The notes under the pieces are model-generated. The model saw only the letters and a list, made by a program, of their open reading frames with translations, was not told the origin of the DNA and ran no database searches. The position numbers and the translations under genes are program-made. From the NCBI GenBank assembly GCA_964247055.1, contig OZ176053.1:6014001-6078000 (forward strand): a DNA stretch of 64,000 nt, written 5' to 3'. Below, piece by piece: positions 13,001 to 43,468 of the stretch. Numbering within the stretch: position 1 is the first letter of the stretch; each line of letters begins with the position of its first letter. Origin of the DNA: Paragordius varius (Eukaryota > Animalia > Nematomorpha).

Positions 13001-14581
13001 CAATTTAGGGCATAGACATATATATTCTTTTTTTAATTATTCTTCGTTTTTTGCCAAATTGAAGTTTGATCCAAAAACTAGCTTTCCAATGGACAAAAAA
13101 TTTTGCGGCATATGATACACATCGTGAAAATATTGTAAAAATTTATCCATTATAAAGAATTAACCTCATTTTGAATCACTGTTTTAATTATATCTATATT
13201 TTAGAACAGGGGGGAACAACATGCGGCCCTCTGAGATATTTTTTGCGCCGTCATAATAAATTTAGCAAAATCTCAAAAAATAGAAAATACCATAATTTAC
13301 TAAATTATTGTATTTAGGAACTCTTCATTTCTTACACAAATTGGCAAAAATTGGTGAATTCTAAATAAATCTTAGTATGCGGTCCGCCAGTTTTTGTGTC
13401 AAAATGGGGCCCGCGAACCCATTGTATTGGGCAGCATTTAAACTAACACCTAATGCTTATTACGTCAACGAAAACTAATATTTAATGTCATATTTTAAAT
13501 TCTCGTTAAATTTTTAAAAACTATATAGAAAATTCAATACATTGTAGTATCTTTTGAGTGGATAATAAAAAAATAAAATGGTACTACCATGTATCAATTT
13601 TGGATATATGGTATCTCAAATAGATATGAATATTCAAATTATCATTAACCCTAATGTTCAAGTTCAACTTGTCAGTTTATCGTTTCATTTAAGTATATTA
13701 CCGACTTTAATAAGTTCCAAGTTGAATGTATGCAAAAAAGCACAAACTCCTATGAAATGGTTATATAGTACTTGCTATAAAGCACGAATCGATTACATAT
13801 CACTTAATAAATGTATAAATATTTTTACTTTAATACGTTTATTAAAACGAATAAATTGTGTTTTACCTAATTTGCAATGCTCTTGTACCTAAGATGCGGG
13901 CTCTCTCATACTTTGTCATAAAAGGAGTTGTTATGCGTTGGGATGGATCTTTGCGTTCAATAACCGTATCTTCATTCAAAGGTAGCACTTCAATGTTTTC
14001 ATATTCTTCCTTAAGAAAAAAATATAAAAACAACTTAAATATTATTTAGATATGACTGTATAAATTGTTTGTTTTGAACTGGTTAAGTTAAATAAATTTT
14101 ATTATAATTGGTCATTTACAAAGATATATATAGACAGAGCATCATATAGGCAATTTATTATCCCTTTAATAGCATAGCAATTATTTACTTATGCTTATCA
14201 TAAAATTTTTTATATATATAAAGCATATAGATTTATCATAAAAGGGGCATAATGTGACGAGAAAGCAACCATTATTTAAATAGGGGTTATGGCAATTAAA
14301 AATTAAATTTATTGAAACATTCATTCCCAAATTTGTTTTATATATGGTCAGCTTAAATTTTTCAGTATTTATGCCTATAATTAAATAGATATGTCTTTCG
14401 TAAACACATTAAAATTAACAACGTAAAATTAATTTGCAATTTAATTATAAAAAACATTCATGGATACCAAAATTTTCAAATACCTGTGGTTCTTCTTCAA
14501 TAATATCATCTTCGATTGGTTCGTCTATCTCTTCATTGCTAATTTATTAAAAAATTATTACTATTCCTCCTCGTCAGCCAT
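7100..14581 (-). CDS. POLR2F: RNA polymerase I/II/III shared subunit RPB6 (RPABC2), 127 aa, 4 coding exons
   Basis: Exons (-): 14581-14562, 14538-14484, 14009-13867, 7265-7100, all GT-AG and phase-consistent (384 nt). Protein MADEEEYNEE...[78 protein letters not shown] is near-identical to the RPB6 core. Confidence 0.97.
7431..7788 (-). pseudogene. Inverted gag fragment of the Gypsy element
   Basis: Reverse complement of ~9070-9430; translates to FAARFQ...[19 protein letters not shown] and [11 protein letters not shown]...[21 protein letters not shown]. Confidence 0.85.
7789..7964 (-). pseudogene. RPS25: Captured 5' fragment of 40S ribosomal protein S25 mRNA
   Basis: ATG at 7943-7941; [52 protein letters not shown] matches the RPS25 signature [23 protein letters not shown]. 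Intronless, 3'-truncated, with a short leader containing TTTCCTTT. Confidence 0.9.
7965..8554 (+). pseudogene. Duplicate gag zinc-knuckle/protease fragment
   Basis: Paralogous to ~9340-9915; [33 protein letters not shown] and YDTEAQISL (degenerate DTGA protease motif). Confidence 0.85.
8555..8820 (+). repeat. Internal full LTR (266 bp) followed by a putative PBS
   Basis: TG...CA ends, colinear with 12530-12787, followed immediately by TTTGGCGCGGTCG (TGGCG-type primer-binding site). Confidence 0.9.
8860..12522 (+). pseudogene. Degenerate gag-pol (gag, PR, RT, RNase H, integrase), Ty3/Gypsy, Mag-like
   Basis: Tandem Cys/His knuckles, YDTGAQ (PR), YLDDVIV (RT), LETDAS (RNase H), HVGHSG and [12 protein letters not shown] (IN), C-terminal [13 protein letters not shown]. 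Order PR-RT-RH-IN; many stops and frameshifts. Confidence 0.92.
12530..12787 (+). repeat. 3' LTR (258 bp)
   Basis: Preceded by purine tract GGATAAGGAGA; TG...CA ends; followed by TSD ATAAT. Confidence 0.9.
13207..13437. mobile_element. Degenerate hAT-like MITE
   Basis: Begins CAGGGGGGAACAAC and carries GCGGCCC/GGGCCCGCG subterminal motifs typical of hAT MITEs; right end eroded, no TSD found. Confidence 0.4.
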
Positions 14582-14625
14582 GTGAAAGTTTAAAATAAAA
14601 CCCAACTTTCTTTTGTAATTGGCAC

Positions 14626-39776: not shown

Positions 39777-42700
39777 ATGGATTTTTGGTTATCTGAAGCG
39801 CATGTTTATCATGGATCGACTTTAACCTTTGGCGAAAAAAATGATAAATTGTGTTTATTATGTTTAATTGATATGGTCAAGGATAATAAAGTAAATTTTT
39901 AACTAAATGTAAAGTTATCTTACCTTAAAAATCTTTATGCTAGTCAGAGATTAGTAAATATGATTGGGGACCCTACCGGAGAAAAAATGGTAAAACATTT
40001 ATGTACCGAAAATCCGAAAAACACCGCAATAATAATTATAAAATATATTGGTAAACATCAAATAATTTTTACTTAGATCTGATAAGCGAAAGAAAAGAAT
40101 TTAATGAAAACCTTTTTTCAAGTAATAATATTTTAAATAAAAAAGTTATAATAAAATTTACCAAGGAAACTAATTCCACCACATTCACCTTGGACATTTT
40201 AAATGAACTATTTGAAAGAGTAGAAAATATTTTAATATCAAGTTTATGAGCAGAAAAAATCAACATTACCTTAAACTAATTGAGTTTATGTTGGAAGAAT
40301 TTAATTTTTTGATACCGAATATTATAAATAGAAATGGTATGTATAACAACAATTTTTAGATGCAATCACTGAATTTTTAGAATTATTGGATAACCCAGCA
40401 TATCGTGCCTCAATAATACAAATATTTTGTAGGTGCATATTATTTCTCAACCAAAATTGTATAAAACCAATTTTTTCTTTTACTAAAATTATTTACGAAA
40501 AGGTTATTTATATAGTTTAATTTATCAGGTTCTTAAATTACTCGTTAGTAATCAAGATTGCGTATTAAGTCCTAAGTTTATAGTGTTATTAGAACATTTA
40601 TTAGATATTAAATGTGATGAATTCCAATCCTTTTTAACAAATAATATTTCTTGCAAAAACGGGTTTTGCCTAGTCATGAAAAAGTTATTATTAACTAAGG
40701 GTCAAACTTTAAGGTATAATTTGTAATCTAGAATAAAGTCTATTATTAAATTTGATTCGGCTATGCATTGAGGATTCCAACGAAAAATGTTTAAGATGTC
40801 AATCTTTTTTGGATTTTGATTTCGCAGAATTACTCACAGAAACGCTTGTGATAGACAACTCAAGCATAAATGCATCAATACTTTATATTTTGATGACTTT
40901 TTCGGATCACCCAGATTTTTATAACAAATGCCACAGCTTATATTGCTTCGAATATTTACTGAATCAATGTTGTTATCAAATTAATTCGGAAAATAAAAAT
41001 CTTACATTGCAATTTATGTCCCTTTTAATACGAATCCTTAAAAATCAACCAAACGGGAGTTTGTTGACAGAAACGGTTCTTAATAAATTCATAAATATAT
41101 TAATAAAAATTCAAAATAGTGAAGAAATGAGACACATTTTGATTGAGAGCATGGAATATTTGTGTCATACGAATCTTGAAAACAGTAAAAAGAAATTCTC
41201 AAATCTTTATGTTGGTATCTTCAATATTTGTTATAATACCTACCAAACAATAAATATGAATGAGATGATAATACATGATATCAATCTTTTAACCCGAATT
41301 TTCGACATATTTTTTGGATTGTTAAACCAATTACATAATGATATAGAAAATACAAATGATTCAAAAACAATTTTAAATTCCATTCACCAAAAAATATTGG
41401 AGATAGGAATCAAATTAATAAATTTATTAACATGTGAAAATCTCAGCCCCGATCTTTTAACTGCAATAATTAAAGTAGAGAATAATGTGCTCGAAAATAT
41501 CGATACAAATATGATATTATCACTTGATTTGATACAATGGTACAATACAGTCTATAAAATTAAAGATTTCTGCAATTTAAGTACATTGATGCAGTTTATG
41601 CAAACCCTCTGCTTTATGTGTAGCAAGTGTAATGATAAAAAATTAAATAATATAAATGGTGGTAATAATAATAATGTCTTTGGAAATAATATGGAAATTA
41701 ATGACTTTTTCTTTGAAAATATGATTGTGCTGAATTCGATACCTAAAATTAATCATTATTTAACAAACAGTGCCAATGGTAATATGGAAGAAATTCCGGC
41801 CATAATCCAGGCCATAAGATTTTTTTTCTTGTTTCATTGGGAGGTGGATTGGGGAATTAATGATAATGAGACGTTAAATCATTCCATAGTTTTTGTAACA
41901 AATGCCACCATACTATTTACAAAGTATATTCAAATTTGTGATCCCATTGTAATCAAGTGTCTCTTCTTTTCCATTAAAGTAGCTGTTATAAATATCAATT
42001 TTATAGAATTTTCAAACTTTGATGGACACAAAAGAAGAAGGATTCAATTTGGCTATCCAGTTTTCTTTGTTATTGAATAAATTTAAACAAGTCAATCCAT
42101 TAATCATGGAATACATTTTGGATTGGCCGAAATTGAGTTTTATTACATGGTGGGCGGAATACCTGTTTGTTTCGAAAATACGGTTGCAGCTACCAGATAT
42201 GAATACAATTTTTTATGAAACCATCCTTACTTTCCCATTAAATGAGGTAAATTAATATTTTATTATTTTATTTTTAGGAAATACTTAAAGTACTTTCCAT
42301 AGACACAGAATCTTTTTTTGATTACAGTTGTCATTGTTTAAATAAAAATGTACATGTGGATCGGTTAACGGAATTGATACCGCAATTATTAATCCATTAT
42401 TTTTGTACTCATGACGAAAATAACAAGGAGATTAATGAATGTGCTGGAAAGATATTAATAAATATCCATAAAAACATTTTAGATTTGGGGATGAAAACGA
42501 ACGTTCAAAACACATATAGAATTTTATTGAAATGGCTAATAATTATATTGGAACAATTGGGAACAATGAAACTCAAAGTACCGCTACAAATCGGGTATAA
42601 ATTAATAAAACAAGGTAGTATTTAATAGTAACACTTTAAGTTTTAAAACTGTTTGAGGAATGTGAAGAATCTTTATCAATTATATGCCTGGAGATATTAG

Positions 42701-43468
42701 TCCTATTGATGCCCTTCGATTCTCAATCCACTAAGAGTGGTGATAGCGACCAAAAACATTTTTGTGACGTTATATATAAACTTTTTGTTAAAAGCGCCAA
42801 GATATGGAATAAATATATTAAAGTTTGGATGGAGTTTCCCTATGATCCTTCAGTTGTTAAAATGGCAAATTCGCTTTTACACAATTGTCATAATAATAAA
42901 TTGTTGGATGCGAAACATGAAACAGTAAAAATAATCATTTAATTTTAGCCATTAAATATTGATATGCAAAAAATAAGTTTAGGATTGCAATATGAAAATT
43001 ATGATTGTCGAATTGAGTTATTAAAATTGCTCCTTATATTGCATGAAACAAGTAATACACAATGGATTACGGTAAGTTACGAAAATTCGGCATTAAACAA
43101 AAAATTTTGGTTTTCTAAAGTCTCTAAACCAGTGTTTTTCCAAATTATTTCTCACACTATTCAGGTACATGGATATAAATGATATATTTTATGTTTTTTA
43201 GGAGGACCCTCTTGATGTTTTAGCGTTTTATCTCCTGTCTAAAATAGTTTTATGCGCTAAAATTGAACAAAACGATAAATGGCTTCAAGATATGTTTCAA
43301 GATCCTTGGTTTGATTTTATTTGCCACATCTATTTCGAAGGTCCCAAGCGACTCATTATTGTTAATCGTCGCGAGTACCCATCGCCTCTGTCTTACGAAA
43401 GTATTAAAGATGTTTTTGATGCCATGGAGGATTTATGGAAAACCGAACGAATCGACATTACAATTTAG
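39777..43468 (+). CDS. MEI1: Divergent meiotic double-strand-break factor MEI1 orthologue, ~1117 aa, 13 exons
   Basis: Exons 39777-39890, 39915-40050, 40077-40120, 40166-40219, 40243-40336, 40360-40502, 40529-40713, 40739-41978, 42007-42246, 42278-42614, 42641-42924, 42949-43164, 43202-43468 (3354 nt, open). AHVYH...LCLLC resembles human MEI1 AHYRH...LCLAC, and LVMKKLLLTKGQTL resembles LVLKKLLLSRDETL (recalled, not searched). Confidence 0.72.

Follow-up and report, generated by a model that had tools for sequence, protein, structure and literature searches.

In a 2026 survey of 51 metazoans, introns shorter than 30 bp were confined to a dicyemid and to the myxobolid cnidarians, all of them tiny parasites whose genomes are compact; Nematomorpha are not mentioned there and a third lineage is not reported (PMC13644364). 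In the myxobolids Henneguya, Thelohanellus and Myxobolus, median introns measure 22-27 bp, occupy animal-conserved positions and are clustered, with short introns having shorter neighbours, in compact genomes of 20-200 Mb (PMC13644364). In the animal Dicyema japonicum, GT-AG introns measure from the low to the mid twenties of nucleotides; some lie at conserved ancestral positions, and the 5' signal is reduced essentially to GTa (PMC6736024; PMC13644364). Its genome is small and reduced, and short introns predominate in it. Among ciliates, Paramecium (~25 nt) and Stentor (15-16 nt) have canonical GT-AG introns below 30 nt and a conventional spliceosome, according to PMC13644364; these are unicellular organisms in which nearly all introns are tiny, without a kilobase-scale tail. 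The original prediction for the DNA analysed here had named ciliates and dicyemids as the known cases. That list is slightly dated, as myxobolid myxozoans are by now known to have introns below 30 bp too (PMC13644364). Our literature search found no paper on such introns in Nematomorpha.

We analysed a window of 64,000 nt (the whole stretch of DNA under study) from the nematomorph Paragordius varius, in which four genes carry candidate micro-introns: RPB6, RCC1L, HPRT and a solenoid ('MEI1-like') gene. As in the myxobolids, short introns occur together, since 10 of the 11 introns of the solenoid gene are no longer than 31 nt. Unlike in Dicyema, the DNA is repeat-rich, introns of 0.2-6.6 kb lie in the same genes, and a G at exon position -1 and a T at intron position -3 remain visible. 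Introns of 2.2 and 6.6 kb with retroelement sequence inside do not fit a compact, reduced genome whose non-coding DNA is uniformly short. Compactness is an observed correlate of ultra-short introns in animals and not their definition, and its lack marks a difference rather than an exclusion.

Anatomy of the sixteen segments

The original prediction placed 16 GT-AG segments of 22-31 nt in these genes, and each is present where it was placed. On the coding strand, all 16 begin with GT and end with AG; their median length is 24.5 nt (n = 16). Retention of any one breaks the reading frame (16/16): 14 have lengths not divisible by 3, and both 24-nt segments contain an in-frame stop, in agreement with the claim that each removal restores the frame or deletes a stop. 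Intron interiors have 10.4% GC, versus 28.7% in exons (p = 4e-16). Exon position -1 is G in 9/16 (p = 1.6e-4), intron position +3 is A in 12/16 and A or T in every case, and position -3 is T in 11/16 and never G. The T enrichment from -3 to -5 (9-11 of 16) and a weak A enrichment at +16/+17 cannot, in 16 sequences at 10% GC, be told from base composition. The same genes also have introns from 48 nt to 6.6 kb, the largest of which hold retrotransposon sequences, and short and long introns share one splice-site type, GT[A/T]...[T/A]AG. Three of the four genes have micro-introns at their first intron positions. The genome here is AT-rich (27% GC) and transposon-rich.

The intron lengths of many animals peak sharply at the size of a 'minimal intron'. 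We propose that the segments are, very probably, ordinary spliceosomal introns of the U2 type (GT-AG) whose length limit is unusually low, such that the minimal-intron peak of this genome would appear at ~22-28 nt. They would be removed at the RNA level by the spliceosome, with a branch point presumably inside the very A/T-rich interior. Many would be shrunken ancestral introns: 5 of the 16 (HPRT introns 1-3, RPB6 intron 1 and RCC1L intron 2) lie at positions common to human or Gordionus introns. Spliceosomal micro-introns beside multi-kb introns in an animal genome, as first predicted, is the best reading.

Many could be true introns whose splicing is inefficient or conditional, like that of microsporidian introns, with intron-retaining mRNA degraded or untranslated, so that the micro-introns would dampen expression and would not be neutral. 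In favour of this, retention brings a stop or frameshift in every case, and a median efficiency of ~25% is cited for very short microsporidian introns (PMC13644364). However, the housekeeping genes RPB6 and HPRT carry micro-introns, which argues against very poor splicing, and we consider widespread inefficiency unlikely.

Orthologous positions in RPB6, RCC1L and HPRT

We compared the window with the genome of the nearest relative, Gordionus montsenyensis (Nematomorpha; GCA_954871325.2). The two share the same genes and intron positions, a head-to-head RPB6-RCC1L pair and ~27% GC. The introns of these two genes are as follows.

14539..14561, minus strand: RPB6 intron 1, 23 nt, phase 2, after CDS nucleotide 20; GT..AG, Gordionus orthology
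7266..13866, minus strand: RPB6 intron 3, 6,601 nt, GT..AG, holding an LTR retrotransposon in opposite orientation
14727..14752, plus strand: RCC1L intron 1, 26 nt, phase 2, probable; GT..AG, frame and start-codon logic
14922..14949, plus strand: RCC1L intron 2, 28 nt, phase 0; site shared with Gordionus

With introns removed, the RPB6 CDS is 384 nt and encodes 127 aa; its alignment with the annotated Gordionus RPB6, likewise 127 aa long, is gap-free and has 104/127 residues identical, confirming the predicted gene identity. Exon lengths of 20/55/143 nt and a collinear final exon (exon 4, at 7100-7265) are identical in the two species. At the first site, after the same CDS nucleotide 20, the Gordionus intron is 46 nt long, versus 23 nt here, whereas RPB6 introns 2 and 3 have expanded here to 474 and 6,601 nt, their Gordionus counterparts measuring 41 and 257 nt. 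The 6.6-kb intron of the original prediction is therefore real by homology, being RPB6 intron 3; its LTR element has protease, RT and integrase domains at 9.3-12.0 kb.

The identity of RCC1L is supported by exon 3, whose best PDB match is 5xgs (RCC1L, RCC1-like G exchanging factor-like protein). At the site of the 28-nt, phase-0 intron 2, Gordionus has a GT..AG intron of 44 nt, also in phase 0, and the exons flanking this site are ~50% and 75% identical between the species. Intron 1, which is probably a real intron, links a 101-nt exon that begins with Met to the first exon encoding RCC1 repeats, in which no in-frame ATG occurs. The 5' end of Gordionus RCC1L is ambiguous, with six different intron solutions possible.

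For HPRT, comparison was made with the human gene.

29636..29658, minus strand: HPRT intron 1, 23 nt, phase 0, following a 27-nt (9-codon) first coding exon
29507..29528, minus strand: HPRT intron 2, 22 nt, phase 2, collinear with human across the split codon
29301..29322, minus strand: HPRT intron 3, 22 nt, phase 0; exons 3 and 4 human-sized
27010..29234, minus strand: HPRT intron 4, 2,225 nt, with an RT fragment inside
26861-26908, minus strand: later HPRT intron, 48 nt
26650-26810, minus strand: later HPRT intron, 161 nt
Minus strand: later HPRT intron, probably 387 nt

Exons of 27/107/184/66/101/50/77 nt join into a continuous 204-codon HPRT sequence, and the first four (27/107/184/66 nt) match human HPRT1, in which exons 2, 3, 4 and 6 are 107, 184, 66 and 83 bp (PMC2826410). 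Residue 2 of exon 2 aligns with residue 10 of the human HPRT chain. In human numbering, exon 2 runs to residue 43, the split codon is residue 44 and exon 3 begins with residue 45. The gene is HPRT, as predicted, according to PDB matches that are collinear across intron 2. Thus, removal of HPRT introns 1-3, RPB6 intron 1 and RCC1L intron 2 yields orthologue-collinear protein; for the ten solenoid-gene introns and RCC1L intron 1, removal was checked by reading-frame continuity alone. Two neighbouring GPCR-like ORFs, tried as a route to HPRT and the solenoid gene in Gordionus, had no homologues.

These positions also speak to whether the segments are removed from DNA instead of RNA, being limited to the germline and lost from somatic nuclei like ciliate IESs. 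The shortest ciliate IESs overlap the segments in size. However, (i) the segments are bounded by GT..AG rather than TA..TA and show the exon -1 G and the +3 A; (ii) the same signals occur in the longer introns of the same genes; and (iii) five positions are homologous to human or Gordionus spliceosomal introns. One DNA run, possibly from the assembly's own sample, contained 93% of the sampled words across the three RPB6/RCC1L introns, which also counts against DNA-level removal. We therefore regard it as highly improbable. In both searches of sequencing runs, only DNA-like runs contained the sampled words; RNA-labelled runs under the same species label contained ~0.00 of them for the two stretches searched, which counts against the spliceosomal reading, and a search for a transcript-derived RPB6 protein from the same species found none, the best match being that of Gordionus. 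Rfam, applied to window positions 1-17700 and 17900-64000, returned no RNA genes and hence no snRNAs.

The solenoid gene and tests for frame restoration by chance

Ten of the 16 micro-introns lie in the solenoid gene, together with an eleventh, longer intron.

39891..39914, plus strand: intron 1, 24 nt; in-frame stop when retained; 11-intron chain
40051..40076, plus strand: intron 2, 26 nt; 11-intron chain
40220..40242, plus strand: intron 3, 23 nt; 11-intron chain
40337..40359, plus strand: intron 4, 23 nt; 11-intron chain
40503..40528, plus strand: intron 5, 26 nt; 11-intron chain
40714..40738, plus strand: intron 6, 25 nt; 11-intron chain
41979..42006, plus strand: intron 7, 28 nt (22 nt with donor 41985); frame kept by both donors
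42247..42277, plus strand: intron 8, 31 nt, 6% GC; 11-intron chain
42615..42640, plus strand: intron 9, 26 nt (23 nt with donor 42618); frame kept by both donors
42925..42948, plus strand: intron 10, 24 nt; in-frame stop when retained
43165..43201, plus strand: intron 11, 37 nt, outside the 16; needed to reach the stop ending at 43468

Removal of the ten micro-introns and the 37-nt intron leaves one ORF of 1,132 codons (CDS 39777-43468, 3,399 nt with all 11 introns out). For intron 9, donor 42615, as originally predicted, has an AG/GT context.

The frame-restoring argument alone is weak, because GT..AG pairs are very common in 27% GC DNA, and we asked how far such pairs could by chance link up open frames across the frameshifts and stops of decayed genes or of random AT-rich DNA. 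Permissive chaining (introns of 18-60 nt) produces 'ORFs' of 150-700 aa almost anywhere, even through a decayed retrotransposon, and a plain filter that asks for an open frame on either side passes hundreds of candidates whose length distribution is flat; both results are what a frame-restoration artefact would produce. We therefore relied only on tests that discriminate: an intron-penalised chain score, a decayed-gene simulation and an AT-rich filter. The solenoid gene has an intron-penalised chain score of 2,418, whereas 15 dinucleotide shuffles reached 441 at most. In the simulation, 0/300 decayed genes with 11 frameshifts each were bridged end to end, and chance bridges had exon-like GC (28%). 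When candidates in the window were limited to AT-rich GT[A/T]..AG segments connecting two frames that are each open for 30 codons or more, 25 were observed at 22-29 nt versus 6.9 expected from shuffles. The main excess fell in this range, which, with the 16 lengths of 22-31 nt, indicates a discrete length peak below ~30 nt. The 1,132-codon chain is thus unmatched by any shuffle or simulated decayed gene, the interiors are far AT-richer than chance bridges and carry the -1 G and +3 A biases, and five introns stand at orthologous positions with identical exon lengths; we give chance almost no credence. Support for the proposed spliceosomal introns comes from orthology, chain statistics and composition.

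The MEI1-like label itself was not borne out. No Pfam family, including MEI1_N and TPR_PRD1, matched any exon in exon-wise queries, and a phmmer search with the 413-aa exon against 1.84 billion representatives returned repetitive junk protein only and no true homologue. In the ESM-Atlas, one exon gave a weak MEI1/PRD1 lead amid generic ARM/HEAT/TPR matches, and another gave generic HEAT matches. Identification as MEI1 is thus a weak lead.

Genome history and significance

The original prediction attributed the coexistence of tiny and very long introns to past extreme compaction followed by transposon-driven re-expansion. Both multi-kb introns do contain retroelement sequence, namely the LTR element of RPB6 intron 3 and the RT fragment of HPRT intron 4. 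Past extreme compaction with later re-expansion is unsupported, given that Gordionus has 46- and 44-nt introns at the two shared sites compared, is just as AT-rich (26.9% GC) and consists of 63.8% repeats. We somewhat favour a history in which, within one nematomorph lineage, the minimal intron length fell from ~41-46 to ~22-28 nt, with the genome remaining large and rich in transposons. Such a lineage-specific drop, without whole-genome compaction, is simpler and fits better than compaction.

If our interpretation is true, ultra-short introns do not need genome compaction, extreme shortening is separated from it, and a changed spliceosome tolerance together with deletion bias would lie behind them. 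It would also be a third independent origin of such introns in animals, and the first in Ecdysozoa. Gordionus, with 44-46 nt at the same sites, offers a close comparison pair for a change in the spliceosome. Aligners and gene predictors with a minimum intron of 30-40 nt would split or lose genes of this kind, and gene finders and BUSCO-style counts of 'gene loss' would be systematically misled in such genomes. By our own reasoning, missed micro-introns could inflate the loss of universal metazoan genes that is reported for hairworms.

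Splice sites and base composition of the short segments

The original prediction placed sixteen GT-AG introns of 22-31 nt in four genes: RPB6 (one), RCC1L (two), HPRT (three) and a gene labelled "MEI1-like" (ten), called the solenoid gene below. We found that, read on the coding strand of its gene, each of the sixteen does start with GT and finish with AG; the median length is 24.5 nt (range 22-31). In fourteen the length is not divisible by three, and both 24-nt segments contain in-frame stops, so any segment that is retained breaks the reading frame. The claim that removal restores the frame or deletes a stop is borne out in each case.

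The GC content of the window is 26-30%, plus a few GC-richer islands, and GT..AG pairs are very common in DNA this AT-rich. A permissive chaining search that allowed 18-60-nt introns and exons as short as 12 nt produced "ORFs" of 150-700 codons nearly everywhere in the window, even across a decayed retrotransposon. A plain filter asking only that both flanks lie in open frame gave hundreds of matches with a flat length distribution. Because chance pairs are so abundant, frame restoration alone is insufficient, and we therefore sought evidence independent of frame. A filter for AT-rich GT[A/T]..AG segments with an open frame of 30 or more codons on either side yielded an excess over shuffled sequence mainly at 22-29 nt (25 observed vs 6.9 expected), with little or none at 18-21 nt and 38-53 nt.

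The sixteen segments also have features of composition and splice-site sequence in common. Their interiors, taken without the invariant GT and AG, are 10.4% GC vs 28.7% in the adjoining exons (p = 4e-16). The upstream exon ends in G in nine of the 16 (p = 1.6e-4), the +3 position carries A in 12 cases and T in the other four, and the -3 position is T in 11 and never G. The long introns of the micro-intron-bearing genes have splice sites of the same kind. On the best reading, the segments would be canonical introns of the spliceosomal type, with a very low limit on their length. RNA-labelled runs under the same species label contained almost none of the sampled words from the two stretches queried, and the RPB6 protein search returned no transcript-derived protein from the same species.

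Orthologous introns in RPB6, RCC1L and HPRT

The features used in this comparison are as follows.
7100-7265: last RPB6 exon
HPRT introns 1-3: 23, 22 and 22 nt, at ancestral intron positions
Later HPRT introns: 2,225, 48, 161 and probably 387 nt

The top protein match of RPB6 is RPB6 of the horsehair worm Gordionus sp. m RMFG-2023. The spliced product of the window has 127 aa and aligns without gaps to the 127-aa Gordionus protein, with 104 residues identical. The two species share the lengths of exons 1-3 (20, 55 and 143 nt) and have a collinear final exon. The introns are 46, 41 and 257 nt in Gordionus vs 23, 474 and 6,601 nt in the window. The position of the last exon fixes intron 3 at exactly 6,601 nt, which confirms the 6.6-kb intron of the original prediction.

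RPB6 and an RCC1-repeat gene are arranged head to head on the Gordionus chromosome, as in the window. Within 14562-14726, the RPB6 start codon at 14581 (-) and the RCC1L start codon at 14626 (+) have only 44 nt between them. Their two 5' UTRs must be extremely short or overlapping; the Gordionus pair lies ~800 nt apart (9195 vs 10001 in L001, a stretch of its chromosome). At the phase-0 site of RCC1L intron 2 (28 nt), Gordionus likewise has an intron, of 44 nt; the flanking exons are ~50% and ~75% identical to those of Gordionus, and exon 3 has human RCC1L (PDB 5xgs) as its top match. RCC1L intron 1 (26 nt) separates an exon that starts with Met from a repeat exon that itself lacks a start codon. 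We rate this intron as probable, because the Gordionus 5' end is too ambiguous for comparison. We note that RCC1L also has an intron of ~870 nt (15750-16619) where the Gordionus orthologue is one unbroken exon (L001 4142-4318), reflecting either a gain in the lineage of the window or a loss in Gordionus.

In HPRT, splicing of the three micro-introns and four further introns leaves exons of 27, 107, 184, 66, 101, 50 and 77 nt, which form a continuous 204-codon sequence. Human exons 2, 3, 4 and 6 are 107, 184, 66 and 83 bp (PMC2826410). In a PDB search, residues 2-35 of exon 2 align to residues 10-43 of the human HPRT chain and residues 2-60 of exon 3 to residues 46-104; the single residue between the two exons is accounted for by the codon that the 22-nt intron splits. 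Given these exon lengths and collinear alignments, introns 1-3 occupy ancestral positions. The 101-nt exon (26909-27009) equals human exons 5 and 6 fused (18+83, where we take human exon 5 to be 18 bp), the intron between them being absent here. Exon 7 (26811-26860) has 50 nt vs 47 in human, one codon more, and the remaining exon lengths checked are the same as in human. HPRT intron 4 contains an RT fragment.

A solenoid gene with ten putative micro-introns

Removal of the ten segments and a 37-nt intron (43165-43201) from the solenoid gene yields one ORF of 3,399 nt (1,132 codons) from 39777 to 43468 (+). Each of its 11 introns is 37 nt or shorter, and the gene is 92% coding. When every intron costs 90 nt, its chain score is 2,418, and 15 dinucleotide-shuffled versions of the window reached 441 at most. 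As a stricter null, we simulated decayed genes by adding 11 random frameshifts to the spliced coding sequence (n = 300): none of the 300 was bridged end to end by chance GT..AG segments, and the chance bridges that did arise had exon-like GC (28%) and no bias to A at +3 or G as the last exon base. Two introns have in-frame alternative donors (41979 or 41985; 42615 or 42618).

The product would be a 1,132-aa helical-repeat protein with a 413-aa central exon. The "MEI1-like" label is tentative: ESM-Atlas gave only a weak lead to MEI1/PRD1 amid generic ARM/HEAT/TPR solenoids, no exon of the gene has a Pfam match, and a search of 1.84 billion representatives yielded no real homologue of the 413-aa exon. 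Since that exon lacks a detectable homologue, the gene either evolves very fast or is specific to its lineage.

Intron length and transposable elements

RPB6, RCC1L and HPRT share a polarity: the first one to three introns are micro-introns, with the long ones (474 nt to 6.6 kb) further downstream. First introns are usually the longest in most animals. The best reading of the sequence comparisons is that many of the micro-introns would be shrunken ancestral introns. The original prediction invoked past extreme compaction followed by transposon-driven re-expansion. Only half of this scenario is supported: both multi-kb introns contain retroelement sequences. Because Gordionus has 44-46-nt introns at shared sites, the same AT-richness and 63.8% repeats, a drop in the size peak of minimal introns that is specific to this lineage would be the simpler account.

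RPB6 intron 3 contains an antisense LTR retrotransposon (7400-12600) that has protease, RT and integrase domains; its two similar gag-like stretches (~7.4-8.6 kb and 8.7-9.9 kb) suggest nested or tandem copies. Further elements with RT occur at 28.1-32 kb and 44-46.5 kb. Two long single-exon ORFs, at 22829-24163 (+) and 36966-38204 (-), encode 445 and 413 aa and resemble seven-helix receptors, with a weak 7tm_1 match in the first; neither has a detectable homologue in a 5.8-billion-protein collection. The introns of a serine/threonine kinase gene at 48084-50790 (Pkinase domain, E = 5e-54) are ordinary, at ~1.1 kb and ~0.55 kb, and its kinase domain shows no obvious micro-introns. A sequence that appears doublecortin-like by eye (63649-63999) runs past the window end and has no Pfam match at E up to 0.001.

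Of the 51 metazoan genomes compared in PMC13644364 (September 2026), only those of myxobolid myxozoans and of Dicyema japonicum are reported to have introns below 30 bp; that study does not mention Nematomorpha. Introns are not mentioned in the Gordionus genome paper or the comparative hairworm preprint, and we found no publication joining Nematomorpha and short introns, the hairworm genome paper of Cunha et al. 2023 being outside the scope of this search. Judged from its genomic sequence, the hairworm would be the third animal lineage with such introns, the first in Ecdysozoa and the first with a repeat-rich genome.
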